Assembly (NCBI GenBank): GCA_964247055.1
Contig: OZ176054.1
Span: forward strand, 9,610,001 to 9,674,000
Direction: 5' to 3'
Origin: Paragordius varius
Taxonomy: Eukaryota; Animalia; Nematomorpha
DNA length: 64,000 bases
Notes under the pieces: model-generated
The model's input: the letters and a program-made list of their open reading frames with translations, nothing else
Told to the model about the DNA's origin: nothing
The model's database searches: none
Position numbers and translations under genes: made by a program
Shown: positions 3,201-63,350 of the stretch, piece by piece
Numbering within the stretch: position 1 is the stretch's first letter
How the letters are laid out: every line of letters starts with the position of its first letter

Positions 3201-3276
3201 AAATCTGTAAAGAGTATGATGCACAGCTTACTTAGCTTTTAACATAGGTATTTTTACTAAATAAAATTTTGGTTCA

Positions 3277-3309
<33 letters not shown>

Positions 3310-6300
3310 GGTGTATATGTATAACTTTACATTGCTAGTGCTATGATGTTTCGAAATGGTTGTTTGAGGTAAAAGAAAAGTTATCTAATTGTACGACTAC
3401 AGTCATGCCCTCAAAAGTCAAGCCAATAAAGACGGAAAACAATGAGACAGGTAGTATTAATATTAAATTTATTTTTAAACATTTAACCAAATTAGTTTAT
3501 ACAAATTATTCAATATTTTTCACCTTTAATTTCCCCTGCATTCCTTTCCTAAAGTTACGGATATGCAGTTTGTTGCAAACTCTATTTTTTTATAAATATT
3601 TTTGCAATTATATTATGGAAATTAATAGTTTTATATATTATATTGTATTTTAGATATTAAGCCGGATGAAACATTAAATGTCTTACCTGAAACAAACTCC
3701 AAAGTTATAAATAATGGTTATACCGTGGATATGGACGAGGATGAGAAACTTATTCCAACGGTTTCGATTGAAGATATCGATGAATTGATTGAAGTAATTT
3801 ACTTTTTTTATAATATAGGTTTTATTTATTTATTAATATATATGTGTATTCTTATTTTACTCTAAAATCTACAGACAAAAGATAAATTTTACATATTTAT
3901 TTGTCCAAATACGGTACTACAAAAGTCATTTTGACCGAGAAAAATTGATAGCAGTGTGCTATTTTATAAATTAACTATTATTGTACAAAATTTAAGACTC
4001 TTATATAAAATGGTTTTTTAATTATATATAAATATATGTAATAAATATATATTGCTTGTATTAGATTGGAGAAAAAAAGCCTAAAACCAATCACCCTTCG
4101 CTCGTAAAATGTCTCGATGAACTCAAAGAAATTATCCAAGCTGCCCAAGCTTGGGAGGAAAAGGCTACACTTTTGTTAGAATCCAAAAAGTAATTTTCTA
4201 AGTTACACCAAATTTTTTAAATATTCATTGTTGTTATTGTTTTCTTTTTTGTTTCTATAGTAATTCCATTGAATCATTGGAAACATTTATGAATGAAATT
4301 GGACCCATACCAATTCATTTACCTAATGTGTTTTCAGTAAAGGATGCTATCGTTTCTGCGCATGCATGGCGACGTAAAGCGCGGAACATATTGGTTTTAT
4401 TTTTGTTGTTTGAACAAACAAATTTAAATTGTTTTTTTTGATAAAAAATATTTAACATTTTGTTATGATTTTTGTAAGCATGCTTATGAGCATTTGGATT
4501 TGAATATTTAAATGTTTGTTATATAATTAATCAAAAATATTTGGTTGTTTTTTGGGCGTTATATTAAAAAAGATATATTTTAAAATTGGAAAAGCCTTTT
4601 TGCCACTAAATATTTAGTTTTTTTTGTAAAATCGCTTATAAAATTGCAAATTAAAAATAAATTAACTTTGAATCCATTTATTTATTTAAAAAATAATTGA
4701 AGCAAAATAATCTATTTTTAATTTACTATTAAATTTGGATAGTATTACAGTATGCATGTTAATGATTGCTTATTTCACACTATAGTATGGCAATTTAAGA
4801 CACAGGAGTGTATGGAAAAACGGAAGAATATAATTGTTTATTCAACATTTTGTTGTTTTTTCCATACACTACAGTGTTCCAAATTGCTCAACTATAGTGT
4901 AAAATAAGCAACCATTAAAATGCATACTGTAATACATTCCAAAACTCATTCATATCATAAATGTTATAAAATGCTATAAAGTGTTAACATATATATATAT
5001 ATATATATATAATACACAATCATAGGATGGAAATACTATTGTAAGTTACAAAAACTTACTGGATTTTTATGAAAACGGTAAAACTATACCAGTTGATTTG
5101 GGGAGGGATTTGGTTGTTCCATTGGAAAACATTCTTCAGTCATTAGATGCTTGGTGTGATCAAGCTAAACGATGTTTTGTTAAGAAAAATTGTGAACAAA
5201 GTTTACAAGAGGTGCGTTTTATTTTAAAATATTTTTTTTACAGATTTTATGCCCCAATTATTTGTCGGAAGAAACAAATAAGGAGACAAAAACTAAAAGT
5301 CCTCTTAAATCTAAACGAATGAAACATAAGGCGAGTCCGATTAGGCAAAAAGGTAAAATAAGATTGATTAATGAAAAACGCTTTTTTTATCACAAATATA
5401 TTATATGTATAGACACTTTCTCGAAAACATTGTTTGATCTCCTCCTAAATAAATTGAGTACGGATGCCATGAAAGACGATAACATTGATAACCAAATAAA
5501 GGAAATGGTATTTTTTGACTCTTTTAATATTACATAATCGATTAACCTTTTTTATCAATATTTATGTAAATAAATATACTTAGGAAAACCATTTAAATAT
5601 CAGTGAATTATGGTAAATTTAACAAAAACTAAACTGAAAATACTGAGTTTTATTTTGTAAGAAGATTATACATTAAAAAATTTATATATATAAATTTTAA
5701 GGGCGTAAAAAATTCTTTTTGGAATCTATATGAATGTATGCAATCGTTTAAAAATTATTGTTGGTAAATTTAATTACTATTTATTTTTTATTTTTTATAA
5801 TTTTAGTGTCGATTATACAAATCGTATTGCGACAAAGAAATTGATGCGTTAGATGATGTTCGAAATAACTATTTTTTGAACTATCAAATATATAAAATGG
5901 ATCAAACATCATCAGTGTCAACCTCCACAAACCCTTTAAAAAACCAAGAGTTAATTTCTCAATCAATTTCAAAAAAGAGTGAATTTAGCTCTAAAAAATC
6001 ACATTCTCGACCAGATAAAGCCAAATTTTGCATTTGCAAATCTGGGGAGTTTCGTAAACCAATGTTATGTTGCCAGCTATGTTTTCAACGATATCATTGT
6101 ACGTTTTATTTTTATGTTTTATATTGTTGATTTTTAAAAAATCAACCAATACTCCTATTTTTAATGGCATAAAATTTTGAAATGTATGATCAAATATATA
6201 ATATATAAAAATATTGATTTTTTGTATTTATAGATGAATGCGTTTTGACGAATAAAACAGTCAATTGTTTACAAAATATGATACGTGGACAATGTAAAGT

Positions 6301-8378
6301 AAATGGGATCGAATATTCTAATCAATTGTTGTCAATGAAACACAACTTGCAGTCTCTTAAAAATAATTTTTTACCTTCACCACCACCTCAACCATCACCC
6401 TTGATAGATTCGGTATCGGCGAACAATGTAACTTTTTTTATTTTTATTATTAATAAAATATTTATTGAATCCATTTTGTTGAGGCATTGTATGCTTTTCC
6501 AAAAATACTTGTACGACCCACTAAAATTTTGAAAATTCAATAATATGTCCTTCATAATTTGCGAAATTATCCAAATCATAGTCAAATTGATATAACTAAA
6601 ACATATATAAATCCTCGATAAGAGTCTTTCCATATGGTAAACAACTAGCCAAAAAGTGTGAAATAAATAATAGTTTGTGTTTGTAATTTTTCTAGTGTCT
6701 GATGCTTGAAATTAATGTTATTTATTATTGCCCATATATTCGAAAGCGGCCCGCAAAATCATATGTTTTGGGCACCCCTGCAATAAATAATTTATGATTT
6801 TTTACATCGGATATAAAATTGCGGTGTATATGTTTTCTATTTTAATCAAAATATGTAATAAATAATTTTTGCCTTAAATTACATTATAATATAAATGCCT
6901 CCACTATAAAAAAATATAATTATGCACTTTTGTTGTAATATGGCAATTTTTAAGCTAATATACCATAGGTACAAAAATTACTTTAACTATAGATGTAGTG
7001 AATAATACCTAAACTTTATTTTTTTAGCAAAATTTTACTGATTTTGGCTTAAGCTATTATATAACAATTTTATTTTTATTTATACAGTTACTAGCGTTGA
7101 TGGATTCACCCTACATTTGCTCCACATGTGTTAGATCTCGCAGACCAAAATTAGAAACAGCATTTTCCCTTTTGATTTCCTTGCAAAAAATGCCAGTCAA
7201 AACAATTGAATGTATAATACTTCAATGTTTAACAGAACGTGCAATAGCATGGCAAGACAAAGTTCAAAAGGTATTGTATTAATATATATTTATGACTAAA
7301 TATATATTTCTATTTTTTTTCATTATTAAACAATGCCACAGAGCACTACATTAAATAGTAATATTATTGGCTTAAAAATTAAATTTTTATTACGCACCAA
7401 TTTAAAACAATATTTTCTCTGTTGTATATGCTTTCTGGCCATATTTTGTAAAAAAAACAAGCAATGTATTACACTGTAGTTTATATTCTTCTATATTTTT
7501 TAAGTATCTTGTATTGCCCATTAAAGCACTACATGAATTTATATAATTTATGTTTTACCATAGTTTTTAGTGTCTGAACCTATTAATCAAGTTGTTAATT
7601 CAATCCGTGCGAAAAAAATGAAGCAATCCTTTTCTTATTCGCCTACTACCACCAAATCCTCATTTGCCATATCCTACAATAATCTAAAACCATCATCAGA
7701 TATCGTTGAATGTAAATTTGTTGAAAAAGACATTTATTCCTCAAATAATATTGCAGGTGATAACGCCTCAGTTTCAACGAACAACACAAGTATTTGTAAA
7801 TCGAGTAATCGTATTGAAAATAACTTCATGTAGTTATTAATATAAAATTTAAATAATTAGCTTTTGCCTTTAAATGGATATGAAAAAAAGAAGATTTGCA
7901 ATATATAATTCAATAAACAACGGTACTAATTTTTTTATTTACAACCCATACAAGTTTTTAGTATAAAGTTGCTTTAATTATTCACTTTCAGTTAAGAGCG
8001 AAAAAATGAATAAATATATACAACATACTATCTGTAAAACAACGATACTAATTTAAATGTAATATTCTTTATTAAGTATCGAAAAAAACTCAACAAAACT
8101 CTTATTAAAACTACTTAATTAAAAATAACTTAGATCCATCCAATCCCTCACCAATCATAGAATCATTAATTACGCCTTCTTCAATTACTGCAGAAAACGA
8201 GGATACACAAAATTCAAATGAGATTCAAAAACCTAAAGCTCCTGCTTTAACTCAAACGATCAACTCCATTACCACATTGAGTATGGCTAAATTGAATAAC
8301 ACCTATAAGCTCTCCATTGAATCTATGTCAAATAACAAAAAGTTTGGCGACAGCTCAAATGTTAATATATCCCAATTG

Positions 8379-8418
<40 letters not shown>

Positions 8419-10739
8419 TGTGTCAGTTTTGACTTTTAAATACTTAAAACACATTATCAAGCTATGATAAAATTTTGTTATCATATGCTAAAAAACTTAT
8501 AAATTAGATGAAATATTTGTTTTAAGCCTAATTTATAGTTAGTTAGTTAATATGAAAATTTTTAATTTAAATATATTTAGAAGTGCCTTGTTTTAGTAAA
8601 ATAGCAAAATAGTTTTTCATAATTCAAACTAGAGTCGAAAAATATGTAAAATGTTAAAAGTTCAACACGCATATTACTTAATCTAGAAACAAAATTTTAT
8701 GGTGATTTTGAACCTAAATGGCATATTAAGATAGGATAAATATATAATTTGGTATTGTATTTTAAATAAATTTGTGATGTTGTATTATTTAGATTCTCTC
8801 CCTACAATTCCATCTATAACAATAAATCTTTTGGAACGATTAATGTTTGAAGGATTCATTATTGAATTAACCATGTCCGAAACGGATACGCTTTGGGAAG
8901 TTTATCGGGAAATTAAAATGTCTCAAAAGGACAATAATGTCATGACAACGACCAATGTCTGCAACGAATTATCTATGGATATTGGCGATTTTAATTATGT
9001 ATATAGATTTGCAAAAACTCTTTTTTACCTAACAGTTTTATGTTACGTTATCTTATAATTTTTATCCTTTTAGGTTTGCAATTATTTGCTAATGCAATAT
9101 GCTACTGAAATATATCATGGTCAAAAGACTTTGGAAAAAGACAAAATACGTTGCAAAGAAACTGGATTAATTGAACAATCGCACTTTTCAACAACAACAA
9201 AAACACAAAACACATTCGTCGTAAGCGTTCATCAAAGTAAAAGGAAACAAAGATTAGTCATTAAACAAGATGCCGATATAATGCTAATCGGAATGCATCA
9301 ACAACAGGCTAGGAAAACGGCTTATTCCGAGTTATTAAACTCTGATTATGATAATGATGAACAAACTAACGCTTTAGAGAGTTGTAATAATATAACCAGT
9401 GCTTTCCCGGACACATTAGTTGAATTGGGTATATTATTGAGTTAGTTTTAGCAGTTTGAGTATATGTTCAAGGCTAATCAAAAAAAGTGAAGAATGATTA
9501 TATCTTTTGTATTTTTGCCTACTATTAATAATAACTCTACTCTGATTTTACTATACGATAAGCTACTACTAATCTTCGTTAGTATAAAGTATCGTTTTGT
9601 CATATGACCAGTATTAAAGACTAAAATTTTTATTTTGTTATTCGGCTGTGGATATTTAACCACTTATGGCACTAAAAGTTATAAAACGTTAATTTTACAG
9701 GTGTTACGGATTCCACCACTAATAAACGTTCAGTTAAACCAAAACTGCCATTTGAAATCAATAATGATAGTATGGATGGTAAAAATCATGGGAAAAAGTA
9801 CCAAACAAAATATACTTGTTATAAACACGGATACCAAAATAAATCTTCTAACGCTTTTCGAAATCGATTAGTTAACAAGGCCCTTCATAGAAAGCGAAAG
9901 GTTCAATCGGAAAAAAGTGATATTTGAATTTATTTAGCCACAATAAATTTCTGATTTTTATGCGATTTATATATATTTTCAAAAAAAGATAAAGCATCTA
10001 ATGATCATGAAGACGATACTAAATGTTCATGGCCAGAATGCAAGGAACCCATGGGATGTTTGTATTATTTATTAGTTCATTAATACTACTGTATAATAAT
10101 TAATATATTTTATATTAATTGCTGGAATCGGTGTTTTTTTGGTGTTACGCCATGATAATGTTTATTAATTTTAAAAGTTATTTAAAAAACCTGATTTTTG
10201 AGATTTTTACCCTGATAACTCATACATTTCCCATAATTATGTCAGCCTTGGCAGGCGAATGTTTACATGAATTTAGTAATTTATGCGTGGAATTAAGGCA
10301 GAAATTTTGTAAGTATTAAATTTAAATTTTTACCTTTTACACTAAAACCTTAAAATTTAAACATTTATAGGTGATATTAATTGGGTTCAATGCGATGGTG
10401 GATGTGAACAATGGTTTCACATGGTGTGTGTTGGATTGAGAGACGATCAATTGGATGATAATGACAATTATTACTGTTTTAGGTAACATTTAAAAGTTAT
10501 TAATTTTATACTAAAAATATTCCCACAATTAAATTATTTCATTGCTCATAGGTACTTAGAATTTATAGTATATGCTATTGTATTTAAATATAGTTTTTTT
10601 GCTCTAATGTTTTTTAAAAGTTACTATTTAAAATGCTTGATTTTATTTTTTAATATATCATTAACTAAGTTTCAATATTTTTATTCCATGTAATCCTGTA
10701 TATTTTAGATGCAAACAGGAACCTGCCGCGGAAAGTTGA
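201..10739 (+). CDS. KDM5: KDM5/lid (JARID1) lysine demethylase, 3' portion: end of JmjC region, C5HC2 zinc finger, PLU-1, PHD2, PHD3. The 5' exons lie upstream of the window.
   Basis: Phase-consistent GT-AG exons: 201-398, 951-1084, 1331-1606, 1858-2221, 2320-2380, 2585-2712, 2787-2903, 2972-3118, 3339-3450, 3654-3793, 4065-4189, 4261-4393, 5026-5211, 5244-5352, 5413-5507, 5807-6098, 6234-6412 or 6427, 7088-7270, 7564-7756 or 7804, 8134-8379, 8793-8998, 9074-9428, 9701-9916, 9989-10057, 10371-10482, 10709-10739 (TGA). Family motifs: [114 protein letters not shown]. Boundaries in low-complexity exons are less certain. Confidence 0.96.
4734..4943. mobile_element. Palindromic MITE-like element in a KDM5 intron
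   Basis: Left arm TTTGGATAGTATTACAGTATGCATG...GTGTATGGAAAAA closely matches the reverse complement of the right arm TTTTTCCATACAC...ATGCATACTGTAATACATTCCAAA. Arms about 85 bp, spacer about 40 bp. Confidence 0.8.
5212..5243 (+). other. 32-nt GT-AG intron in KDM5
   Basis: gtgcgttttattttaaaatattttttttacag. Removal gives SLQE|ILCP (cf. KDM5 SLLEVLCP); retention frameshifts to the stop at 5320-5322. Confidence 0.88.
6746..6780. mobile_element. Right-end fragment of a hAT/Buster-type MITE
   Basis: GCGGCCCGC...TTTTGGGCACCCCTG resembles the reverse complement of the CAGGGGTG.. left ends at 42947 and 57607. No partner end found. Confidence 0.4.
8381..8414. repeat. (TA)n microsatellite starting at the KDM5 donor site
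   Basis: About 17 TA units directly after the G of the GT donor at 8380. Similar TA runs near 3280-3309, 4989-5011, 15235-15264 and 59567-59589. Confidence 0.9.
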
Positions 10740-11996
10740 AGAAAAAATTATTATTTTCATAAATTAATTATTTTGTAAATTATATACAGTATTATATAAC
10801 ATGTTTCATGTATTTTTACGGTGTTGACTATTTGATAATGTTTATTAGTTTTACCGCTTTCATGTAATATCAGAATTAATTTTTTCTATCATATTTTCCT
10901 GTATAAATATATTATGAATAAATGTTAAAGATATATGATTGTGTAATGTAAATGCTCAATCCTTGGATCTGTAAAATAATTAATTGTACATAAGGGCTTG
11001 TGTTACGTAAAAAATCGCCATAAATACACGGGGTAAGAAAACTCCAATTCCAGATTCCTGACCCATAAAAGCGCTATGTTAAATTCTTTGCCTTTATAGG
11101 GCTAACATTTGGAATCATCCTTGATACCATCGTCTAATGAGTTATTCGAAAAAATACCTTAACTAAATAATCGTTATATAATGGCCTTTTAGGGCATAAA
11201 TGCCCTAAATTAACGACTAATAAAAAAACCCGATACCTTAGTTTTTACGTTACGGGTAATATTTCGAGCTTTTAATGAGATCATATGGCTTCATAAATTT
11301 TCTGAAAATTAGGTCCAAAACCACGCAATTTATATATAGTGGCGCAGTTTTAGCGGCTATCTGTTTACCCAGCAGCCAATATTAAAACAAACGCAAGACT
11401 AAAAATTTTGCCTTTTAACAGAGAATAACTCAAATCATCAGTGAATTTTAACGGTCACACCCTGGGCAAAAAATATTTATTTTTTGGAAAAAATGGCATT
11501 TTACGGGGGGAACGGGTAAAAAGATAGCCTAAATTAAAAAAGTAAGCCGACTAGGTTCGGCGCAATCGAAAAAAAGTAAAAATAATCTTATTTTAAATTG
11601 AATGGTCCAACACGTTTACCGGAAAATTGTCTCAAAGACATGATTTTTCTACACTTCTGTTTTCAAAAAAATCTGTTTTTTACACGAGTTGGGCCCAAAC
11701 TGGAACTTAATTCAAAAAAGGGGCGAAGCGATTGTTGGGCATTCATTAATGATTATATTTTTTTGACATTTAAATTTGAATGGGTCTACCGGTTTTCCGG
11801 AAACAGATCACAAAGCCAGCATTTTCCATTTTCATAAATATATAGATTCTAATGATCGGAATAGAAAAGCTGGTATAAACAGTCTTTCCGAACCAGAAGA
11901 TTTTATGATATATTTATCAACGGTAATTGTTATTTTTCTTTATAACAATAATTTTACAAGTTAAAAAACACTTTTTGTCAAATTGTATTTTTATCA

Positions 11997-12062
11997 GTCG
12001 CGACCCAATAATTTTGCTACACGACCCCAAATGGGGTCGCGATCCATAGTTTAAGAAGCATA
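11997..12062. mobile_element. Right-end fragment of a hAT/Buster-type element
   Basis: GTCGCGACCC...GGGGTCGCGATCCATAGTTTAAGAAGCA resembles the typical GGGTCGCGACCC..AGTTTGAGAA.CACTG terminus of this family. Confidence 0.45.
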
Positions 12063-12642
12063 GGGATAAATTTTATAGTTGCAAATTTTTTGCCATGGTT
12101 TGTTATTAAATTCTTGTGAGTTTATGACAATTTTTATTATCTATTAATAAGTTTTAGCTATGCCTTTTACATTATCTTAAATGGGGAGATTAAACTGTGA
12201 CGCAATTTAGATGATTCTGCATGAGGTTTTAGTTTATTTGATATATAGTAAACCATTTTCCTTCCCTATTCCCCCATAATGAGCCTGATGGAGGAAAACT
12301 ACACGACTTAATATCTGCATCATGACCCTTTTTTAAATGATTTAATTTCAAATAAAAAATAATTTTTAATTTCTTTCATTTTTTGGCTCATAATATGTGT
12401 AAAATAAAACATCCACAAAATAGTGGATGTGAAAGTGTATACCAACTGTTTAATATTTATGTATTGAAATACATAGTTTGATTTCGAGTCCAATTCTTAC
12501 CATCTGGCAAACGCAAATTTTTAGAGAGATATAATAAAGGGTTATTAATTCGAAAAAATTGCCCAAACACTGATACACGATAAATAAATGTAACTAAAAC
12601 GCACCAAAACCTCTAATTGTCCGTATTGGCTTTAAATTTAAA

Positions 12643-13356
12643 CCAGATGTATGAGTTTCGGTTTCTTGGTATCATGTAATTTTGAAAAGAAATATTATTT
12701 ATTTTATTCAAATTCTACATAGTTTGCCCATCTCTGGGTAAAATAAAGTGTTGCCAGAAAATTGATTATCTTTTGCGGAACCCATTCGTCATATTTTCCA
12801 ACGTTTTCATTATTATGAAGTGCTACTCTGCGAGGGTGTATTTCATTGATGCGAAGTTGTATTAGTCAGATGGTGCCAGGTCAGGAGAGTTCAGCGGATG
12901 CGATCGAATTCCCTATCAATCGATATTAAGGTGTCTTTTATTTATTTTGTAGTGTAAGACGGAACATTCTCATTAACGAAATCACTTTTTCATGTCTTCT
13001 CCGATTTCCGTCGTTTTTTGATTAATGCATGGTTTACATCACTCATTTGTTGACGATGCCATTGTGTATTAACGGGTTCACCGTGTTTCAAAAGTTCATA
13101 ATACATAACATCGCTCTGGTCTCATCACAGAGAGAGCACAGTCTTAATAAAGCGATTTGGCATTGGTGTTGCTAGACCAGTTGGGAAAGGTGAAAGTCAC
13201 TATTTTCTCGCTTTGGGATACAAAATAAACATTTCTTATCATCCGTCTGAATTCAATTTTAAGCGAGTTTTATAAGTAATTTTCGATTTGTTCATTCAAA
13301 TTGTTTGGGACCTATTTGCCGAGTTTATTAGTCTTTCACATTGCTCGTAGGCATAA
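12643..13356 (-). mobile_element. Decayed mariner (Mos1-like) transposon, 3' half
   Basis: Minus-strand fragments KLGK*VP (WVP motif), DQSDVMYYELLKHGEPVNT and HPLNSPDLAPSD*YNFASM (YSPDLAPSD motif), with stops and frameshifts. Terminus CCAGATGTATGAG at 12643 resembles the Mos1 TIR CCAGGTGTA. Cut off at 13356 by the next element. Confidence 0.88.
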
Positions 13357-14443
13357 CAGTGGACAACAAATTTTTCTGCCACTCGAGTTTTTTGCATTTT
13401 CTGATATTTAGTATCATTTTAACAGTAAATCTGAATAAATATTATAACTCGATGGAAGAATTTTGTACATGATTTTTTTTATTATGCGCCCTCTTTATCA
13501 AAATTTTACTAAAAAATGTTTTTTTGAAAATATACAAGTAATGCCCATTTGCAATATATCAATAGAAAGAGTAATAAAAACTCTATAAAATGCATACTAA
13601 TATGTATTACATCGACAGTTAATATTGGACACAAAGAGCGACAAACGCGCGAAGCGAGAGCATTTTTTTTAATTATTATTAAAACTAATAGATGAAAATA
13701 GCTCAACTTTGTTTGGATGGTGATGAATGTCCAAAAAAGATGATACAAGAAAATTTTGATTAAAACATTTTTATTGCTTTTATGTCACTCAAAACAGCCA
13801 TTTTTAAGTTTTTTGTTTTTTAAAAATTACCATCTCATCAATATTAATTTATTTTCTTTACGAGGCTGATAATTTCGAAATTATAAAGATAAAAACAAAG
13901 TTAAAGGTATTTTTATTCTTTTATAGCTAATTATGTAATAAATTTACACTTATAACTATGCATTTTAGTATCCACTAGGTAAAATATCTATGATAAAAAT
14001 AATTTTTATTAAAAAAGCAAACCAAAAGCTTTTTCAAACATTTTTTTAATTAAATACTAATATAACCCTAATAATTATATTAGAATAATTTATATGATTT
14101 TCAAATTAGTTTGTCTGTGAAAATTCTTGACTTATTTAGGGATTGAAAATTTTGACCATTTAAATCCAAATAACTTTTACATCCGATTGATTTAAATAAC
14201 TTAATACCATTTAAAAGGTGCAGTTTTTTGCGCTCTTTCGAATGATATAAATTACATGGCTTCATATCTAAAACTTTTAATTTTCGAAATTTTGAGTATA
14301 ATGTTAAATCGGGGCCAAAAATTATCGATAAACTCTAATATATGAAAATTCTTGCATGCTAGACCAATTTTCTTTCAGATATAATAATTATGTACTTTAA
14401 CGAAATAAATTTTAAATTTACAAGAATGGCAATTAAAAAAGTG
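13357..14443. mobile_element. 1.1-kb non-autonomous DNA transposon, copy 1
   Basis: Collinear, high-identity copy of 54488-55588. Left end CAGTGGACAACAAATTTT; the right TIR has a short deletion between two AGT motifs. Flanked by TAA on both sides. Confidence 0.85.
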
Positions 14444-15233: not shown

Positions 15234-15268
<35 letters not shown>

Positions 15269-43409: not shown

Positions 43410-43420
43410 AGTTTAAAAAT

Positions 43421-45148: not shown

Positions 45149-46786
45149 AATATTTTCTTATATTTATAAAGTTTTTATGTTAAAAAATAAACAAAATTAC
45201 TTAAAATATTGTATACTTCATAATTTGTCAAATTATATTCGAACACATAAAATGGCTTTTATTCAACATTTAAATTTGATTCCGTGTCCTTACTTAATTT
45301 ACTATGGAAAAACGCGTTCGATAGCAGTGGTTCAGGTAAAGATAAGGCAAATTCTACAATTAAAATATTATTGTATGGTACATAATTTGTTTAAAAATGA
45401 TTATTTTAACCATTTCTATCCTACGTATTTTTTTCTATTGTCCATAATATAAGTTTTCATTCAATATATTTATTTATTAATGAAACTCCATAAAAAAGTG
45501 TCATTGTGCACTTCTTATCTTCCAAATAATCGTTTCTGTTTGTATAAAACATTTTTATATTCTGGCTATTCATTGAGCCTTGTTTTTCTGGATGCTTTAT
45601 TATATTGCGATTAGGTAATGGTATAAAATTATTTTCTAATCTTTTTTGACTTGGAATTTTGACCTTTGTCCTGTGATAACAAATAGGATTCTAGGAGATC
45701 ACATTTTTAAATATTTCAATCGCTGGCAAAAGAGCTAACCAACAGTTCTACAATATCCAAGCATTTTAACATCTATATTTTCCACATCCAGGGGTAACAA
45801 ATCAGTAGCTGTTTGAATAGGGTTGTGTTCCTGCCAATGTTTTAATTAAGATTATTATCTAAATTGTTAAAAATATTTTTTGTGCCGCTTCTTACATCAC
45901 CCATCGCACTTTGTGATGATTTCGTCTTTATTATTTTTTTCTAGAATATTACAATCACTTCACCCTTTGTTCGTGCACATGTAAATTTATTGAATAAGGT
46001 ACAAACAACCGGTAAGGTACAAATTTTTTTATATTTATAATGTATTTGTGTGAATGAATAAATATTACAATAAATTTTTTGTATAAAAATTTTTGGTTGT
46101 ACTCCCCAATGACCCCCCCTTCTCGGATTTGTCCCGTTTTTTCCTTCAAAAAATTCACCTTACGCATACATAAACACTTAGCCTACTCAAAAATGGTTTA
46201 CAAAAATTAAAAACATACATTACTTCTATAAAAATCTCCATTTATGTTTTAAATATTATGCATTCTTTTTATTGACAACCTAATGCGATTTATGAATTTA
46301 TACTTTTGAAAGATGTATTAGCTTATATAAAATAAATTTTAAAAATTTTGAAAATAAGAAAATTAGACCGATGCAAACAATATCGACACATCACAATATA
46401 ATTAACCAATTAAATCGATAAAATAAATATGGTTTTGGGTTAGAAGCTAGGCTTTCTTTTTCGGGCCCTAATTAGACCCAATCCACACCGGAATAAAAAT
46501 CTGGAGGCAGAACCGGAGACCCTACGCAATAAATTTCAAGTTTTATTTTCAGTATTTTTGTCACATCGTATATGGTTAGACAAAAATGCTTCTTGATGAA
46601 TCTTAAAATTTTCGTACATACTAACCTTTACCCCATTATTTTATAATTGATGCATAATCGATAAGAAACACATGATTTATAATCTACCATTCAACAATCA
46701 TTACATTAATGATTTGATTCGTAATGTGATTATTGATGATAAATACTATTATAAATGAAGTGAAGAGCACATTTATGCTATAATGT

Positions 46787-49291: not shown

Positions 49292-49375
49292 TTAAATGAT
49301 TACAATCTATAAATATAAGTAATGTATATTTATTATAATAAATAAATTCTTATATAAGCTGATGATAAAATATTG

Positions 49376-52300: not shown

Positions 52301-55300
52301 GTATCCATAAAATAATTGAATGCCTATACAAATTAAATAGTTAATTATAAAATTGAATATATTTATCTTGTAACCTGTTTCGCGGGTGAAAGCCACTCAG
52401 AAAAAATGTTTGCATAAGCTAAAGCACTTTTTGCTTCTGCACACACAAAATAAATTTTTGGGATGTTAGATATGTCACCAGGAAACGCGACAGAGAGATT
52501 ATAATGAAGACACTCTAAAAGATCTAATGTCAGGCCTAAAAAGAATTAAATATAAATAGAGAGTTAAACTGTATACTGTGAAAAACAAAAAAAGGCAAAA
52601 GTAACTTGAATTGATAAATATTGTCACTATTCATTCAAATAAATGCGCGAAACTAAATTTAAATATTTTTTTCTTAGAGTATATTAGAATTTCGAATCAT
52701 AAATTTTATCCCTCGGTTGTAAAGATGCGTATTTTATTTTTTCATTTTTATTTATTAATATATTTATTTATTTTTTGGTTCCTTTTTGGAATTCTTTTTT
52801 AATCATTTAATTTTTAGTTACTATATATTTTAGTGTTTTTTTATATCAATTTTATTCTTATTAATTGTATTGTTATTTTATAGGGGTTTTGTTTGTAAGG
52901 CGTGCAGGCCAGACCTGGCCAGTCGCTCCATCCAATATGGATAAAGAATTTTTTAGAGTATGTTTTGCCAGTAAAAATGTTGGTTCGTTAAGAAGTAAGC
53001 TATATATGAATTATTTGAAACTATGAGGGTAAAAAAGGTAAATTTCTTGTGCATTCAGGAGAGATCCCGTGGAAACGGCACTGAGACGTTAGATAAAATG
53101 TTGTATTCAGGTTCTAATGTTGGTTAGAAAGGGGTCGCCATAATAATGTGTCCAAGATTTGTCAATCAAGTAATTGAGGTTAGACGTGCTGATAGTAGAA
53201 TTATAAGTATTGACCTATTGTTAAATAAGAAGGTTTTTACCCTCTTTAATGTTTGTGCTCTCCAGATAGGGTTGAGTAAACCGGAGAAAGACAATATGAT
53301 TTTTTAGACGGAGAAATGAGTTCATTAACGAAAGACAGCGAAATCATATTTTGTAGTGATTTCAATGGTGTGGAACAAAATAGAAAAGGTTTTGAGCCTT
53401 GGCATGGCGGAAAGGGTTACGGGGTTAAAAATAAAGAAGGGGCTTTTTATTAACGTTTGCCCAATCTTATAATTTAGCTTTAACAAATACCTTTTAAAAG
53501 GGATAGCCATTTAATTACCTACAAACGTGGAAATACGAAGTCACAAAATTATATTCTTGTACCGCGAAAGCCTTTAAAATATGTTGTGGACTGCAAAGTC
53601 ATATCTAACCTGCAGATTAATGAAATAACATAATTTAAATATGTATACATATATATACATATATATGACAGTATGTTAATAAATGCTAAAAAGCGTAAGC
53701 TTTAGCGCCAAAGGTAATAAAATGAGATTCCTTAAGGAATAGTAAAGAAAGATTTGTAGAAACGGTAGGCTAGACAGGAACAGCGATCCAGAAAATGTTT
53801 GGTATCACATGACTAAATTAGAGAAACGGTAATTAAGGTGTGTGGAATGAAAGGCGATAGAAATAAGGTGTATAGAGTGGCATGGCTGAAAAAGTGGAGG
53901 TTACCCGCCAAGCAGAAGATAAGGAAAAATGTGAAAGGATTAATAAGGAACTTATAAGACTTGTGAGAATGGTTCAAAAAAATCAAAACGTAATTACTAT
54001 GTGAGGAGTTAAACAGTAAGCAAGGTCTAAACCAGTGGTACTCAAACCGCAGCCCTAAGAGTGCTTTAAAATTGCCCTATGACCATATGGATACTTTATT
54101 TATTTATGAATTTTTAAAATACACATAAACGAATTTTCTATTTTAATTTAATTTATTTTCTTTAGATTTAATTTTGGTAATTTTTATTTTTTACTCAATT
54201 TGAAATGTAGAAAAATTTCCCTACATTAAAATGATTTCAAAATTTTGGCACACGTTGTTTCTGTTTCTATATTCTATTTTCTTTTCTATTTTGAAATTTT
54301 TATTGCATTCCTTTTTTGTATTGAAGCAAGCCTTTCATCCACACTTGCATATACATTCATTGCTATCCTGTATCATTTTTTATAACTCATTCCTATTAAT
54401 TTTTTTTCAAATCAACATCATAAATTTCAACCTGTTTTTTTATATAATTCAAATTATATTCCTATTATTTTGAAAAAATTTACATAACACTGGACAACAA
54501 ATTTTTCTGCCACTCGAGGTTTTTGCATTTTCTGATATTTAGTATCATTTTAACAGTAAATCTGAAATAAAAATTATAACTCAATGGAAAAAATTTTTAT
54601 AATTTGATTTTTTTGATTAGGCGCCCTCTTTGTCAAAATTTTATTAAAAAATGTTTTTCTTTGAAAATATACAAGTAATGCCCATTTGTAATATATCATA
54701 AAGAGTAATAAAAACTCAAAATGCATACTAATATGTATTACATTGACAGTTAATATTGGACACAAAGAGCGACAAACGCGCGTAGCGAGAGCATTTTTTT
54801 TAATTATTACATTTTAAAACTAATGGATGAAAATAGCTCAACCTTTGTTTAGATAATGATGAATGTCCAAAAAAGATAACACAAGAAAGTTTTTTTGATT
54901 AAAACATTTTTTATTGCTTTTATGTCACTCAAAACAGCCATTTTAAAGTTGTTTGTTTTTTAAAAATTACCATCTCATCAATATTAAATTATTTTCTTTA
55001 CGAGGCTGTAATTCGAAATTTTAAAGATAAAAACAAAAAGGTATGTTTGATTTTTTATAGCCATTATGTAATAAATTTACAGTTATAACTATGCTATTTA
55101 CTAGGTAAAATATTAATGATAATAATAATTTTTATTAAAAAAGCAAAACAAAAGCTTTTTCAAACATTTTTACTTTAAATACTAATATAACCCTAATTCT
55201 TATCTTAAAATAATTTATTTGATTTTCAAATTAGTTTGTCTGTGAAAATTCTTGACTTATTTAAGGATTGAAAAATTCGACCATTTAAATCCAAATAACT

Positions 55301-58300
55301 TTTTCATCCGATTGATTTAAATGACTTACTACCAATTAAAAGATGCAGTTTTTTTGCGCTCTTTCGAATGATATAAAATACATGGCTTCATACCTAAAAC
55401 TTTTAATTTTCGAAATTTCGAGTTTAATGTTAAATCGGGGCCAAAATTTATGGATAAACTCTAATATAAAAAAATTCTTGCATGCTAGACCAATTTTCTT
55501 TTCAGATATACTAATTATGTACTTTAATGAAATAAATTTTAAATTTACAAGAATGGCAGTTAAAAAAAGTAAAATTTGTTGTCTAGTGTAATATTTAAAC
55601 ATAAAAAAGGATGACATCTAATGCTAAAAAACGTAAATTATCCGATGAAAATTGATCCTTTAAAATAGAATGGGAAGAAAAATCCTATGTAGTTTTAACC
55701 GAAAATGTTGTTACCTGCCTTATGTGTAAGGACAACATAATTATAAAAAAAATACAATATTAAAAGACATTTTACAATCCATCATTCTCATAAATTACCA
55801 GAAAATCATGAGGAAAGAAACAAAAAATATAAAATTAAGGAATTATACCAGAAAGAAAATCTATTAAGTACATAGCTTTCTCCCAGGGAAAAGCTGTAAC
55901 ATTAGCTTCGTATGAAATTTGCTATATTGGAAAAATATGAAACCGTTTACTGATTCTTAATAAAAGAATGTCTAAAATGGTTGCACTTTTTTATTTAGAT
56001 ACAGTTAACCATATCCGCGGCAGAGAATACAACCGCTGTAAATTAAAAAACTCTCTGAAAGATATCCACATTGAGTTTGATAATATTCTTTTGAACACCG
56101 CTGTGAGATGGCTACTTAACAAAGTATTAAATAGATTTTTTGTTTTAGGACATGAAACTCAATTTATATAATTAATAAAATGGTGGGTTTTATTAGCCTA
56201 CCTTTACGACGTTACTAAACTTAGTATTTTTAATAAAAACTTCATGGGAGCAAAATAATAATCCAATTTGCTTATCATATATTTGCTTTTGAAGAAAAAT
56301 TAATAATATAAAAACAAGATTTTATAAATAACACATTCCTATATTTTCCAACAAAACGATTCATAAATAAAATATTGAATTTACTAGGGAGATTAATTTA
56401 ATAATAGACAATCATTTAACATTTTTATCTAACGAGATGAAATTCAGATTTCAAGAATAAAAGAAATATTAAAAATTGCTAAAAACTCGTTGAAATCCAT
56501 GGCATATGGATACATCCAATATTAAGCAACTTGAGAATTTCGGTTTTGATCAGGTGTATATCATTAGGGAATTCGTAATTTTAAAAATGATTCCAATTTG
56601 GAGGCTATATTCAAGGAGAATCGTAGAGAAGAAAGATGTGTAGAGTTTTGGCAAGATGTGCCAAATAAATATGAAAATATAAAAAAATGTGCTCAAGTTA
56701 TCCCAACTCTTTTTCCCTCAACTTACACATGTGAGACGGCATATTTAAAAATGGAGTATGTCAAGAATACCTGCAGATGTCGCTTAACCGATGATCATAT
56801 GGATTGAGATTGGCCTGTCATAAGGCGAAACCAAATTTGTCAAAAATTATTGGTAAATAGCAAAATAAAGGTTATTATCAAAATATTTTAATTTTTAAAC
56901 TAAATGGTGCAAAACCAGTTTTTGGCTGAATTTATATGCGATCCTCAAAAAATTCATTGTGCTAATTTAGAGTATAAATATCTGCATATTTGTCAAATAG
57001 TTATGGAATATTTGCCATTATAAGGGTTCATGGTCCTCGAAAAAAATATATATTATTTGGTTTTGGTGAGTACCACTGGTCTAAACAAAGTTTTTATAAA
57101 TAATCGACAAAGACCCAGAGGAAAACTGGACTTTCCCCCTTAGGCGACCGCTATTAAAGACAAAAAACAGTAAATTACTCGTGGAAGTGAAAATTTTGAG
57201 GAGGTAGAAAGAATATTACAGGACCTTGAATTGGGTATCAATAAAACGAATTTACTCGAAACATCAGACTAGGTATCTGCGCATATTGAAAATATAACTA
57301 AAGAAAAAGTTCAGGGTTGTTTAGAATAGATGTCTTAAAGCTGCAGGTCCAAACAATATTAACATAAACTGTTGGAAAATAATGTCAGAGAAATGAATTG
57401 AATTTTTAACGGATATTTTTAATAATGTAGTAACTACGGGTATGATACCATCTGAAAAGAAGGAGAGTTTCACTGTTCCCATTTTTAAGTGTAAAGGAGA
57501 TATAAATATTTGTAACAATTTAGAGAGGGATAAGATTGATGTCGCATACAATGAAATTGTTTAAGAAAATTGTAGAGAAACGAATAAGAAAAAGGTTATG
57601 ATAGAGCAGGGGTGTCTAACACAAATGGTTTGAAGAGCCATATTTTCGATCTAAAAAATCACAAGAGCCATATTTGAACCAACATATATCAAGACATATG
57701 TATCAAATAAATTTATTATATAAACATTTATAGATGTGTTATTTTCATATAAATAACAAAATAACTGGTAAAAACATTAAAATATTGTTAAATTGTACCA
57801 ATATGTTAAACAAAAAATTAATGCCTGGCAAATTAAACTTAATTTTTTAAATATACTGCCATTGAAGAAAGCACAAATATAGTATATATCACCACAATAA
57901 ATTGTATTCAAGAAATTGATAATTTTTTTCACAGACACCATGAAGTTATCCCACCTAAATTCCTACTGAATGTTTAGCATGCAATTTTAAAATATTAAAG
58001 AATATATTAGGAATATATGTATGGGCTACAGAATCTTTTATTAATGTATTAAAATAAAATCCGACGTTTTAATTAAGATCAATATTAACAATGCGCTGCT
58101 TGCACCAAAATTTGAACATATTTTTTGTATTATGACGCACGTGGTTAGAAATGTATAGTTATTTTAAAATAATCTACTTTAAAGCATGAAAAAATTAAAG
58201 ATCTATAGAAGAATATTGATATTAAATTGGAAATGTTATTTTTAAATTGTTGACAAAAAATTTTATTCAATAAAAAAAATGAAACTGTGGTTTTTAAAAA

Positions 58301-61300
58301 CATGGCTCTGTTACATATAAATAAAAGAAGTTTATAAATTTCAAATATTTTCGATTACGTAAATTACTCCAATAATATGGGTATTGCTACCTTAACACTT
58401 GGATACAACACATTTGTTTCGGTCCTTTAAATCAAATTGGGGTAGTTAAATACCCAAGGCTTGTTTAAAATAAAATTTTTTAAATAATATGTAATAAATT
58501 TAAACCATGGCAAAAGTGTTCACTTATATAACATTAATGAACCGAAATATAAAAAAATCGTTCAAATAATAAAAAAGAAGAGTAAAAATATAATTATAAA
58601 TATATTGTATAAAAATGAAACATAATACGTTAAATCTTAATTGTTTAATATATAATACCAGTAACATCCTGACAGCATATGTTTAATTCTTTTATGATTA
58701 TATTTTTCATCAATTGTTTTAAAAATTTGTCGATTATTTGTTTGGTTAAAATTCAATCGGTAGAGAGCCTATCAAGGTTTTTGAATCACCAAATATAGCT
58801 ATAACCACATATATGCACGTAAAACTAAAACTTGGATTTCTAACAAGTCGTTTCCAACTTATTTTTCCAATAAAACATATTCGGGAGATATTTTAAAGGC
58901 TTGAAAAGTGAAAATAAAAAGTTTTTGCTTAAGTGGCTTATTAGATTAGACAATCTTCGTTCAAGATCGATGTTGATCTTATTTAATAATTTTGGGTTTA
59001 GAGCAATTACTAAAATAGTTAATAAATATTATTAGCCCAAAATTATTTTATTAAATATATAGATGATAATCGAATCCCTCAATTATTTGTGTTATTTGTT
59101 TAGGTAAAATTTTTAGATTACTCCATCTTTATCGATATATATGATAAAGGGCTTCACCAACCGTATTTAATATGCAATGAAGTAACTGTAATTCTCTCCA
59201 CACTAAATCAAAAAATAACCATACTATGTAATGAAAATAATACTGGCACAATACGATTTTATTATATTAAGTCTTTTAATATTCAATAAATTTATTATTT
59301 TTTATAATCCTCCATTTTAAAAACATATTTTTTTATTATTAACAACATGATCTTTATTTGACGTTTGATGAGAAAATAAAACAAATAGGCTATGATAAAT
59401 AAATGTATAATGATATCGATCATTTACCCAGACGTTTAAAAAACCGTTTTGAATTAAAAATTTTATTGGAATTTCGATTGGCAGTTATATACAAATAACA
59501 TTTGTGAATATTCTCCAAAGGGAGATAAAGTAAAAAAAAATCCTTCAAATTTTGTGTAAATAATTATATATATATATATATATATATATTTAGTAAAATT
59601 TTATTCATTAAATATTGCTAAAAAATACGTTGTATATTCTTATTACAAATTTATAAAAGCATAAAATGTAATAGGCCTTATTTGGGGTTTATGGTTCAGG
59701 ATTATTATAGGATTTAATATTAGATAATGTGTAAAATGACATTCAAAAATTTCCAGCAAATGTTAAACAATGATCAATCAAAGAAAATTTTACAAAAAAA
59801 TAAAAAAGATATAAAGAGATATTTTGGTTAAAATGGGTCCATCTTAAATAGCACATGTTTTAGTAATTTTTCATAAGTTTAATTAATATTTTTTTAAAAT
59901 GAACAAATCATATTTTACACAATATAAAAATAGAACAAAATCAAAAATACATGTTAATAATGTAAAATTAAACACTTAATCAAACTATAAAATATTTGAT
60001 TGTGCAGTTGATTTGCTCTTTTAAAAAAATAAATAAATTTTTTTAAAAGAAATTAAAAAATCCATTTTGTGCCTAACTTCATAAAATTTTACATTAACGT
60101 ATATTCATTAACTTAAACCTTTTTTCAATTAAATACAGATTTTTAACCAATATTTAATGTATGAATAAATATTACATTGTGTGCAAAAAAATAATAATTT
60201 TTTTTTCATGAAATAGCTTATGACCTGCGAATTTATTTGCCGTAATTTTACTTGTTATCGACCTTCTTTTTGTAATAATGAGAGAAAATCAAAATCGGGC
60301 AAAAAGTGAAAATTAAGGATAATTAAAAAAATAATGATAGAACTTGAGATATTATGATTTATTATTTTAGCAGATATTTACAATTTATAAAAAGCCTAAA
60401 ATACAGTTGGGATTTTTATAAAAATTCAGATTAAAAATTCGCATTTTTCTATTAACGTACTTAAAAGACAAATTTATGAAACTATATTAAAATAATTTTT
60501 TTAATTTATTTACTATCTAAACTCACTATTAAAATCTTAATATTCATTTTTTTCAGCAAAAAAACTTGTATATTAAAATAAAACGAATGTGTTTTATTTT
60601 TTCATTTTTTTGTCATTTAGTTTAAGAGTGTATAAAAAATGTTTTGTTTTGAAGTCTTACACGAGAGAGAATTCTATATTATATAAATTAATACAAAATA
60701 TATTTACAAATAGTGGAATATCAACCAAATATGCGTACAAATCCCAGTAAAAATATTAGATGTGTTAAAACAAACCTGTTACAGGGATTTACGAATTTTT
60801 GGTTGATATTCCACTGCTTGTATTTGGTTATAATTATATACTTTGTAATTTCCACCCATCTAGGATTCCAAAAAACAATATAAAATTTATTATATGCCTA
60901 CGAGATAGCAAAAAATAAAAAACAATTTGGTTGTATTTTGATATACAATTTTTTTTATAGAATATTGAGATTTTAATATGGAGTTTAGCTGTAAATAATC
61001 AAAAAAATTGATATATAGCTTCATATCTTTTAAATACGTTAATAGAAAAACAGGATTTTTTGATCTGAATTCTTATAAAAACCCTAACAATATGATTTTA
61101 GGCTTTTTATTATTTGTAAATATCTGCTAAAATAATAATAAACTATAATATCTCAAGTACTATCATTTTTTTAATAATCCTTGATTTTCACTTTTGCCCA
61201 ATTTTGATATTATTTCAAAAAACTAGGTCGTCAAATAAAAAATTTTGAATGAATTCGCGGTTATAAGCTATCTCATGAAAAAAAATTGTTAAAACGCTCT

Positions 61301-63350
61301 TTTTTGCGCAGTATTAATAAAAATCTTCTTCAAATGCTTGATTTTTTATATGGAAATAAAATAGGTGTTTAATATTAAAAAAGTGTTGAGATTGATTAAA
61401 GAAGGTATTTTTTGATAAAAAAAGTAATCTGCATTTTTGACGTACACTTAATTTACTTAGGTCAAAATTAAGTATTATATTCTATACCAGATAATGGGAC
61501 CGGAACTAATACATTGCCACCATTTTGAAGAGTGTTTGTAACGATTCTAGAAAATTCTGATATCATAGCTTCGGGTTTATTGCCTGGACAACGGGTAAGA
61601 TCTGTCAAATATGGTGTTTAAAATATTCAATTAATAAATATATATAATTATTGGTTTAAATAGTATGGCTTTTTTATAATACGAACATACAGTAAGATTA
61701 ATAAATGATTCTCACAAAAAATGAATAGTTAAAGGAAAAAGATTATATTTAACTTATTTTTAAGAAGGGTTCAATGGAAAACTTTGATACAATAAAAAAA
61801 ATTATGTTAACGTTTTTCTTTGAATAAAAAAATACCTTTTCTAAGTTGCTTTAAAGTACATCATGTAATAGCAAAAATTTGATAAAAAATTATTTGATTA
61901 CGAAATTTATGATCAAAATCTTGATTTTTTTTTGTATCAGAGTTATCCATCAAACTCCCTCAAAATTTAATATATCATCAATTTTTACTATTCATATTTA
62001 GTAATAAATCTTTCTAACTGAAATTATTGATCTACACTTTATATACCGATAGTGCATGTTAAACCATACTTTTCAACTCCTAAATGTTTAGTTTTTAGAT
62101 CGGAAAGTGAACTAATGGCTGAGTGCAAGAATATAATATCTTAAAAAAATTTGTTAAATATTGTCTAAAAGTTATATATTTTTTAGTATAAGATTTGCAT
62201 CATAATTAATTTTGACCATTACTTTTCTACTAATTTTTACTTAAATCATAATATTTTTGTTGCATTTAAAACTTTACATGTTTGGTTTTCTTAAACGATT
62301 TGCGCAGCAAAATATATTTCAAATCGCAATAAATATTATCAAAAGATGTCCAACTTTAAGTCATAAACAAATATATTTAAAAAAATTAAATATAAACAGA
62401 AGCAAAACCAATTTAACCACTTTTTGTAAAACGTTAATCAAATTCAAATTTTATTTTCAGTTAAGACTTTGGTTCTAAGATCTTTAATGCCATGATTTAT
62501 ATTTTTTTAACATTTTAAATTATAAAAAATAAAAGCAAATTAAATAATAACCGGTTACAAACGCTTATATTAATAAAAAAAAATTGCAGTTTCTATTAAG
62601 TGACTTCAGGACTAAATCTGAAAAAAATATTTTAAAAACTACATATTTTAAGATAAAGGTTGTAGATTACGCTTTAAACCGTTTAATTTAAAATAATTAT
62701 ACCACTAAGTATCAATATATCAGGGTAACGAAGGCTAATCAAATCAATAGGTTTAGGATGAGCTGTAAGACTAGATGATTTAGAAAGGTAAACAATTTTG
62801 TGAAGGGCTGTTTCGAAAACCCAATTACAGCTTCCCATTGCGTAACCTGAGCTTGTGGCATAAAACGTAAGGTGACCAAATAAATTTTTACGCTCCAAAA
62901 AATTTATTGTAGTAATCATTGCAATTGCATTTTCAAGATCCTATATGTATATAAGAATATAATACTTGGAAAGTATAAAATTGAGAAAATTTAGATTCAC
63001 GAGAAGAATAATCCAACATATCAATATAGCTGATTAATTCATTCATATACAACTTTCCAAACTAAATTATTAAGTGAACTAACTTGAAGTGTTGGCTCTG
63101 TTGCATATATTTCACCCCTAAATCCCTCTTTTATAATAAAGGGTAGCGATAAGATATTTGAAAAATTTGATATTAGGAGAATATCAATTGTATGGTAGTT
63201 AAGTTCGTTTAACACAGGATCAACATTAATTTTGTACTTTTGGTTGCAGTTTTGTGTAAAAATATTTTGGAAATTTAGAGGGCATTCCAACAATATATTA
63301 ACTTCATTTAGCGTTAATATAAATTTGTTTTCTGATTTTTGAATTTTCAT
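49376..63350 (-). CDS. INTS9: Integrator complex subunit 9 (metallo-beta-lactamase/beta-CASP fold)
   Basis: Exons 63350-63084, 63061-62966, 62940-62703, 61601-61488, 52535-52375, 51696-51343, 51188-51125, 50708-50520, 50235-49376; all GT-AG and phase-consistent. Motifs DILLISN, GEIYATEPT, SSGYAMGSCNW, HPKPID, NGGNVLVP, DLLECL, IFSEWL, KVYVPEEPF, PCVVLAGHP, CPIDT match INTS9 as recalled. Confidence 0.95.
54033..57078 (+). mobile_element. hAT Buster/SPIN-type DNA transposon with decayed transposase
   Basis: 12-bp perfect TIR CAGTGGTACTCA/TGAGTACCACTG and perfect 8-bp TSD GTCTAAAC (54025-54032 and 57079-57086). Transposase relics KKRKLSDEN..EWEEK..CLMC..NIKRHF, TAVRWL and FPSTYTCETAY..RLTDDH. 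Confidence 0.95.
54488..55588. mobile_element. 1.1-kb non-autonomous DNA transposon, copy 2 (CACT termini, 3-bp TAA TSD; CACTA/EnSpm-like or PIF-like)
   Basis: TIR CACTGGACAACAAATTTT / AAAATTTGTTGTCTAGTG (17 of 18 match); TAA at 54485-54487 and 55589-55591; no coding relic seen. Confidence 0.9.
57607..57690. mobile_element. Left end of a hAT-type element at the point where the second LINE copy stops
   Basis: CAGGGGTGTCTAACACAAA with GAGCCATATTT repeats starts exactly where LINE homology ends (..ATAGAG). A similar CAGAGGTGTCCAACACAAA is at 42947. Right end and TSD not found. Confidence 0.55.
60180..61310. mobile_element. About 1.1-kb foldback palindrome in INTS9 intron 4
   Basis: Imperfect inverted arms of about 550 bp around a loop of about 30 nt near 60750-60780, e.g. 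TTTCATGAAATAGCTTAT/ATAAGCTATCTCATGAAA, TTTTAGCAGATATTTACAA/TTGTAAATATCTGCTAAAA, AGTGGAATATCAACCA/TGGTTGATATTCCACT. Confidence 0.88.
62941..62965 (-). other. 25-nt GT-AG intron in INTS9 (intron 2)
   Basis: gtattatattcttatatacatatag. Removal gives QFYTFQ|DLENAIAMI (cf. RCYTMQEVNSALSKI); retention hits TGA two codons after the intron. Confidence 0.88.
63062..63083 (-). other. 22-nt GT-AG intron in INTS9 (intron 1)
   Basis: gttagttcacttaataatttag. Removal gives YATEPTLQ|FGKLYMNELISYID (cf. [22 protein letters not shown]); retention gives VSSLNNLVWKVVYE*. Confidence 0.92.

Follow-up and report, generated by a model that had tools for sequence, protein, structure and literature searches.

Very short spliceosomal introns are a feature of several unicellular systems, including Paramecium (approximately 25 nt), Stentor (15 to 16 nt), and the chlorarachniophyte nucleomorphs, all introns being tiny in these lineages. 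Stop-free introns with lengths divisible by 3 are underrepresented in Paramecium, a bias interpreted as a sign that unspliced RNA is under surveillance. Here, we analyze a 64,000-nt stretch of the genome of the nematomorph Paragordius varius (referred to as the window; all coordinates are positions in it), in which 5 GT-AG segments of 22, 25, 23, 23, and 32 nt are found in 3 genes, INTS9, synaptophysin, and KDM5, as candidate introns of comparable size.

In a 2026 survey covering 51 animal genomes, introns below 30 nt were confined to myxobolid cnidarians and Dicyema, the genomes of which are compact, and such introns were linked to genome reduction (PMC13644364). In these parasitic animals, the introns of myxobolids and of Dicyema japonicum have GT-AG ends, median lengths of 22 to 27 nt, and conserved positions, and the conventional U2 snRNA and U2AF are kept (PMC13644364). 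Nematomorphs are not mentioned in that survey, and the nematomorph genome papers that we searched never use the word "intron" and do not describe such introns for the phylum. Somewhat longer microintrons are described from flatworms: intron lengths of Opisthorchis felineus peak at 37, 90, and 3000 nt, with the microintrons being clustered, located at the 5′ ends and under-annotated (PMC6530080), and those of Gyrodactylus salaris have modes at approximately 32 and 58 nt (PMC4040987). Annotation software overlooks flatworm microintrons if the shortest permitted intron is set too long (PMC6530080, PMC4040987). The genome of the nematomorph Gordionus, with 26.93% G+C and 63.8% repeats according to its genome paper, resembles the window, where the G+C content is 22% to 33% along the whole length.

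Candidate micro-introns in 3 conserved genes

Four of the 5 segments had been reported in a preliminary description of this DNA, namely 63062–63083, 62941–62965, and 21748–21770 on the (−) strand and 5212–5243 on the (+) strand, and all 4 were recovered with the same strands and lengths. The assignment of their host genes to conserved families held as well: exons 1 and 3 of INTS9 match the fly and human INTS9 structures (PDB 7sn8_I), exon 4 of synaptophysin matches PDB 9b8o_U (E = 2.1e-10) and a later exon the Pfam MARVEL domain, and KDM5 is recognized by Pfam KDM5_C-hel (8.6e-26), zf-C5HC2, and PLU-1, although the window begins in the middle of this gene and its 5′ half lies outside. None of the 5 lengths is divisible by 3, and retention brings the reading frame to a stop after 14 and 10 codons for the 22- and 25-nt INTS9 segments, 2 codons for 21748–21770 in synaptophysin, and 36 codons for the 32-nt KDM5 segment, in agreement with what had been claimed for these 4. 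TTAA- or CTTAT-like motifs occur 6 to 12 nt before the AG of each segment, as expected by chance at approximately 80% A+T.

The product of the GT and AG frequencies in this window is 0.0017. Given this value and the 3 to 4 equivalent placements available at each junction, the probability of finding GT-AG ends at the best-fitting deletion is approximately 0.005 to 0.007 in each case. A naive scan for GT…AG pairs joining open frames yielded 476 pairs versus 469 in the antisense control and, being non-discriminating, was dropped as a statistic.

Judging from the sequence, we regard the segments as true U2-type spliceosomal introns with GT-AG ends that have shrunk almost to the shortest workable length and reside in a transposon-rich, non-compact nematomorph genome, and put the probability of this reading at roughly 0.85. 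Such introns would be removed from mRNA by the ordinary spliceosome through intron definition, whereby the 5′ splice site, a branch adenosine located 6 to 12 nt ahead of the AG, and the 3′ AG itself would be recognized within a span of approximately 20 nt, similar to the situation in ciliates, myxobolids, and dicyemids. Lengths that are not multiples of 3, together with early stops, would let nonsense-mediated decay clear the unspliced transcripts. The preliminary description went further in proposing an altered intron-definition mechanism, for which we found no support: an Rfam scan of the window revealed no RNA gene, neither an snRNA nor a splicing factor is located in the window, and the published animals with tiny introns keep a conventional U2 snRNA and U2AF (PMC13644364).

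Two adjacent probable micro-introns in INTS9

The 5′ part of the INTS9 gene model comprises the following features.

63084–63350 (−): exon 1, beginning at ATG; matches residues 88–132 of PDB 7sn8_I (E = 2.1e-09), the match ending exactly at the donor
63062–63083 (−): predicted intron 1, 22 nt, GT-AG, phase 0
62966–63061 (−): exon 2, 96 nt, between both micro-introns; INTS9 profile positions 129–159
62941–62965 (−): predicted intron 2, 25 nt, GT-AG, phase 0
62703–62940 (−): exon 3; matches residues 185–265 of PDB 7sn8_I (E = 8.5e-16), the match beginning exactly at the acceptor
61602–62702 (−): intron 3, 1101 nt, best-scoring GT-AG join
52536–61487 (−): intron 4, 8952 nt, best-scoring GT-AG join (96.6 bits versus 79.6 bits for the runner-up)
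51697–52374 (−): intron 5, 678 nt, best-scoring GT-AG join

The remaining exons of the gene are intact and joined through ordinary GT-AG introns, and the 8952-nt intron given in the preliminary description was reproduced exactly. To score the junctions, we used a profile built from 40 full-length homologues, which were found by a library search with a later INTS9 exon. All deletions of 0 to 60 nt starting within 30 nt of the claimed donor were made, and the stop-free products were scored without assuming GT-AG ends. At intron 1, the 22-nt deletion ranks first among 430 distinct stop-free products (179.7 bits), with the GT-AG placement being one of the 3 equivalent placements of this deletion. 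At intron 2, the 25-nt deletion ranks second among 406 (179.7 bits), next to deletions of 7 nt (181.1 bits) and 1 nt (177.0 bits); canonical ends are obtained only with the 25-nt deletion, whereas the other 2 are not GT-AG. Exon 2, which can be aligned with INTS9 of Gordionus and 8 other INTS9 proteins, encodes 32 amino acids, approximately 20 fewer than its fly and human counterparts. The difference falls in a variable loop, and because exon 2 ends in this loop, a few extra residues cost nothing in the score, which accounts for the near-tie. Thus, of the gapless restoration of conserved motifs that had been claimed for all 4 segments, the INTS9 part holds for intron 1 and, at intron 2, for the junction itself; it also holds in synaptophysin, whereas in KDM5 it is suggested by reading-frame logic.

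Intron positions shared with Gordionus

The closest protein to the spliced INTS9 model is that of Gordionus sp. m RMFG-2023 (Nematomorpha; XP_065313668.1), with 42.5% identity over 482 amino acids, the alignment being a single one that extends across both micro-intron junctions; the next-best proteins display 34% to 35% identity. At the Gordionus locus, the RefSeq and ENA annotations, which are independent, both contain introns of 39, 664, and 50 nt, and the full-length RefSeq model has 3 further introns of 1533, 444, and 873 nt. The 664- and 50-nt introns occupy the exact positions, in the same phase, of the 22- and 25-nt segments of P. varius, with the 22-nt intron and its 664-nt counterpart both following the motif EPT(L/F)(Q/H). 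Altogether, 4 of the 6 Gordionus intron positions are common to the window, including those of intron 3 (1101 nt), which matches within 1 nt, and intron 5 (678 nt). We consider these shared positions to be the strongest single argument for both INTS9 segments being introns.

The 2 nematomorphs are alike in carrying introns at shared positions of the same gene within the same phylum, and the annotated 39- and 50-nt introns of Gordionus demonstrate that very short introns do occur in nematomorphs. The lengths differ: at the 2 positions concerned, the Gordionus introns measure 664 and 50 nt and their P. varius counterparts 22 and 25 nt. In the Gordionus INTS9 locus, the one locus compared, no intron is shorter than 30 nt. 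A difference between the Gordionus isoforms X1 and X2 was considered as a possible micro-intron and rejected, as it corresponds to an alternative donor 36 nt upstream.

Two further observations concern the same locus. The 39-nt Gordionus intron (positions 3217–3255 of the Gordionus locus) falls where exon 1 of P. varius is continuous, pointing to an intron gain or loss between the hairworm lineages. In addition, an LRR_8 gene, a single open reading frame (ORF) of 835 amino acids at 46784–49288 (+), is positioned tail-to-tail with INTS9, and an LRR gene is likewise found at 11146–12420 (−) of the Gordionus locus. The 2 LRR proteins are only weakly similar (28% identity over 132 amino acids), so that synteny is claimed solely as the presence of a tail-to-tail LRR gene in both. 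A protein search with the P. varius LRR ORF returned generic LRR matches and no closer taxon.

Persistence of the segments in genomic DNA

We compared the contigs of 4 sequencing runs over positions 60500–64000, including one from another sample (X4) and one from another study with a different organism label (X3). All 4 runs were judged to be DNA because introns and intergenic sequence are covered alike. A 649-nt contig of the first run (X1), corresponding to 62681–63329, is identical to the window across both INTS9 segments. The 22-nt segment is also present in a 653-nt contig of X4 and a 151-nt contig of X3, that is, in the DNA of 3 samples in total, showing that it is not an assembly insertion. 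The 25-nt segment is covered by X1 only, which may be the source sample of the window assembly. Hence, the possibility of assembly insertions, raised in the preliminary description, can be set aside for the 22-nt segment, whereas for the 25-nt segment the supporting contig comes from the likely source sample.

These data bear on 2 alternatives to splicing. In the first, the segments would be sequence or assembly errors, or small insertions in decaying pseudogenes. This explanation could draw on the 1-nt deletion in the second INTS9 segment, the score of which is close to that of the 25-nt deletion (177.0 versus 179.7 bits). We nevertheless regard it as very improbable, given that the X1 contig shows no difference across both segments and that X4 and X3 carry the 22-nt one. 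Furthermore, no long homopolymers are present in any of the segments, the ends are GT-AG throughout (p approximately 0.005 each), 2 of the segments are located at orthologous intron positions, and the rest of INTS9 and of synaptophysin is intact.

The second alternative, to which we give even less credence, holds that the segments are removed from DNA rather than RNA, akin to the internal eliminated sequences of ciliates or the programmed DNA elimination of nematodes. The sizes of the segments do overlap with those of the smallest eliminated sequences of ciliates. However, the ends are GT…AG rather than TA…TA, and the homologous positions in Gordionus are ordinary annotated introns. Moreover, every covering contig keeps the segments, the 22-nt one in 3 DNA sets and the 25-nt one in a single set: no covering DNA contig of X1, X3, or X4 lacks either of them and, among the joints listed, none skips 22 or 25 nt.

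Two probable micro-introns in synaptophysin

The synaptophysin gene model contains a pair of micro-introns in the same arrangement.

21860–21877 (−): exon 1 (coding part), 18 nt, consisting of the ATG at 21877 and 5 codons
21837–21859 (−): probable intron 1 (proposed), 23 nt, GT-AG; acceptor forced, donor inferred
21771–21836 (−): exon 2, 66 nt, 22 residues, between the 2 micro-introns
21748–21770 (−): predicted intron 2, 23 nt, GT-AG, phase 0
19659–21631 (−): intron 3, 1973 nt; the only in-frame acceptor gives "…YPY-K-LNH…", compared with "…YPF-R-LHQ…" of the solved protein
17429–19390 (−): intron 4, 1962 nt
16437–17224 (−): intron 5, 788 nt

Exon 2 matches residues 9–27 of 9b8o_U (hence 7–28 for the full exon) and exon 3, of 39 residues, matches residues 29–69, so that upon removal of 21748–21770 the 2 exons abut at residues 28|29 without a gap. 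Synaptophysin is the only protein in the whole PDB matched by exon 2 or by exon 3. The remaining exons are intact and joined through ordinary GT-AG introns.

Upstream, exon 2 is closed by a TAG in the same frame, which also serves as an acceptor, and the exon lacks an ATG in this frame; therefore, an intron must end at 21837. The donor nearest to this acceptor follows an ATG and 5 codons, which amount to exactly the 6 residues preceding the exon 2 match in 9b8o_U. Segment 21837–21859 is thus a probable fifth micro-intron, beyond those listed in the preliminary description.

The KDM5 segment and the weighing of the gene models

The 32-nt segment lies in the 3′ half of KDM5.

5026–5211 (+): upstream exon; Pfam PLU-1 positions 285–336 of 338, up to the donor
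5212–5243 (+): predicted intron, 32 nt, GT-AG, phase 0; the acceptor is preceded by a run of T
5244–5352 (+): downstream exon, placed by reading-frame logic only
5353–5412 (+): candidate intron, 60 nt, GT-AG, stop-free, placed by reading-frame logic only

The PLU-1 match reaches the donor, showing that the KDM5 frame is right up to this point. Removal of the segment creates an open frame of 97 codons and also a motif regarded as conserved in KDM5 proteins. The 32-nt segment is the weakest of the 5 candidates, being defined by reading-frame logic and this motif. It may represent the lower tail of a class of 60- to 75-nt introns elsewhere in the gene: candidates of this size are visible in the KDM5 sequence, along with many gaps of 200 to 700 nt, and suggest a middle length mode.

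The candidate at 5353–5412 contains no stop and its length is divisible by 3, so that the frame is kept upon both retention and removal, and it may be an optional segment. Further short KDM5 candidates from the naive scan (936–960, 3628–3653, 3844–3874, 7552–7570, and 9047–9073) were not counted, as they resemble the acceptors of larger introns or would require homologues to be judged. The C5HC2 zinc finger of KDM5 is split over 2 ORF pieces, 951–1112 and 1308–1607 (+), with a long unmatched stretch rich in N and Q preceding the second half; this reflects an inserted stretch within the finger or else an exon that was joined wrongly.

Several points weigh against reading all 5 segments as introns. 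The PLU-1 profile ends just short of the KDM5 junction, which is covered by no Pfam profile or PDB structure. At INTS9 intron 2, the profile scores alone do not separate the 25-nt deletion from those of 7 or 1 nt, and the donor of the 21837–21859 intron is a choice. With 5 introns, the statements on branch sites and on the depletion of lengths divisible by 3 carry no statistical weight. Protein searches found no transcript-derived protein of P. varius or a close relative. Neither a further nematomorph protein nor any protein of the P. varius genome was returned by a profile search with Gordionus INTS9 and the exon pieces of the window; a full-length INTS9 of P. varius is absent from the protein collection searched. 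Finally, in run searches with stretches of both INTS9 and KDM5, the RNA-labelled runs of the species contained no words of either gene; since no RNA run contains these genes, excision of the segments from mRNA is something we infer.

A third alternative is that the gene models are partly wrong, with more distant acceptors or other first exons being used, chiefly at the 32-nt KDM5 segment and at 21837–21859. The absence of a profile or structure across the KDM5 junction, the first synaptophysin exon with only 18 coding nt, and the many alternative GT…AG pairs in AT-rich sequence, evident from the naive scan, all leave room for such errors. On the other hand, INTS9 and 21748–21770 fit their homologues exactly, counted as the best of all deletions, the INTS9 positions are common to Gordionus, and the next KDM5 acceptor tried by eye (5412) leads to a stop within 12 codons. 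Hence, we consider mis-modelling unlikely, although less so than the error and DNA-elimination scenarios, and retain the interpretation of the segments as spliceosomal micro-introns.

Probable micro-introns coexist with transposon-filled long introns

In order, the INTS9 introns measure 22, 25, 1101, 8952, 678, approximately 591, and approximately 460 nt, and a discrete short class stands beside kilobase introns within both INTS9 and synaptophysin. In both genes with visible 5′ ends, namely these 2, the micro-introns are the first 2, adjacent introns. Overall, there are 5 tiny introns among the 12 modelled in INTS9 and synaptophysin plus the 1 tested in KDM5, so that tiny introns are not the majority.

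At least 2918 nt of the 8952-nt INTS9 intron, one third of its length, are copies of elements found elsewhere in the window. These observations bear out the multimodal length distribution and the transposon-filled long introns proposed in the preliminary description. The intron contains a nested palindromic element of approximately 1.1 kb (approximately 60199–61285) with arms up to 95% complementary. The contig depth of this element reaches approximately 270,000, compared with approximately 350 for single-copy sequence, indicating a very high-copy element of the miniature inverted-repeat (MITE) type. A non-long terminal repeat (non-LTR) retrotransposon with endonuclease and RVT_1 (4e-19) domains, spread over several frames, is located at 26261–29315 (+), and fragments of it (77% to 83% identity) are found within the same INTS9 intron at 52724–54027 and 57078–57606. 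Another element, of 1.1 kb, is present in 2 copies that are 90.6% identical, one intergenic (13352–14440) and one within the INTS9 intron (54483–55567).

Elsewhere in the window, 2 adjoining intronless ORFs of approximately 460 amino acids, 31526–32899 (−) and 34124–35503 (−), are clearly paralogous and display weak matches to rhodopsin-type proteins with 7 transmembrane segments; they may constitute a lineage-specific receptor pair. Between this pair and a hAT-like region at 43.5 to 45 kb, ORFs of 309 and 133 amino acids (36955–40001, −) have no Pfam match and are partly acidic or of low complexity.

Comparison with other tiny-intron systems

If our reading is correct, the presence of 22- to 25-nt introns beside a 9-kb transposon-filled intron in a single gene would separate intron miniaturization from genome compaction. 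Such genes would be frameshifted or truncated by gene finders and aligners that require introns of at least 30 to 40 nt. Missed micro-introns would accordingly bear on the low BUSCO scores (71.6% for Gordionus, according to its genome paper) and on the gene losses inferred for Nematomorpha.

In a broader perspective, introns below 30 nt might have arisen independently in Nematomorpha as a third animal lineage, and for the first time not as a by-product of genome compaction; they would instead form a discrete class concentrated toward gene 5′ ends, in a repeat-rich genome with otherwise kilobase-long introns. We find the case for this generalization about evenly balanced. If it holds, extreme shortening of introns would be selected for or driven close to the start of the transcript, locally rather than genome-wide, and some of the "rampant loss" of universal genes described for hairworms could be an annotation artefact of missed micro-introns. 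Among the known systems, ciliates and nucleomorphs share the size range with P. varius, and all 5 P. varius introns have lengths not divisible by 3 and early stops, although 5 introns do not amount to a test of depletion. Myxobolidae and D. japonicum are similar in that 4 of the 5 P. varius micro-introns are shorter than 30 nt (22, 23, 23, and 25 nt; the fifth is 32 nt), in the GT-AG ends, and in the conserved positions, as seen in INTS9. By contrast, nearly all introns of Myxobolidae and Dicyema are tiny and their compact genomes contain few transposons, whereas in P. varius the tiny introns are a minority and a transposon-rich intron of 9 kb occurs in the same gene.

The coexistence of micro-introns with kilobase introns, emphasized in the preliminary description, is evident in INTS9 and synaptophysin but is not new in itself, being known from flatworms (PMC6530080, PMC4040987). 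O. felineus, tapeworms, and G. salaris resemble P. varius in their multimodal intron lengths, large and repeat-rich genomes, and adjacent short introns at the 5′ ends. Nevertheless, the flatworm modes are at 32 to 37 nt, compared with 22 to 25 nt for 4 of the 5 P. varius micro-introns, and the 32-nt KDM5 intron is not located at the 5′ end. Since P. varius is an ecdysozoan rather than a flatworm, its micro-introns would have originated independently and would extend the 5′-end arrangement of flatworm microintrons to Ecdysozoa, with even shorter introns. The P. varius case is thus one of flatworm architecture combined with the size range of myxobolids and dicyemids, in a phylum new for it.

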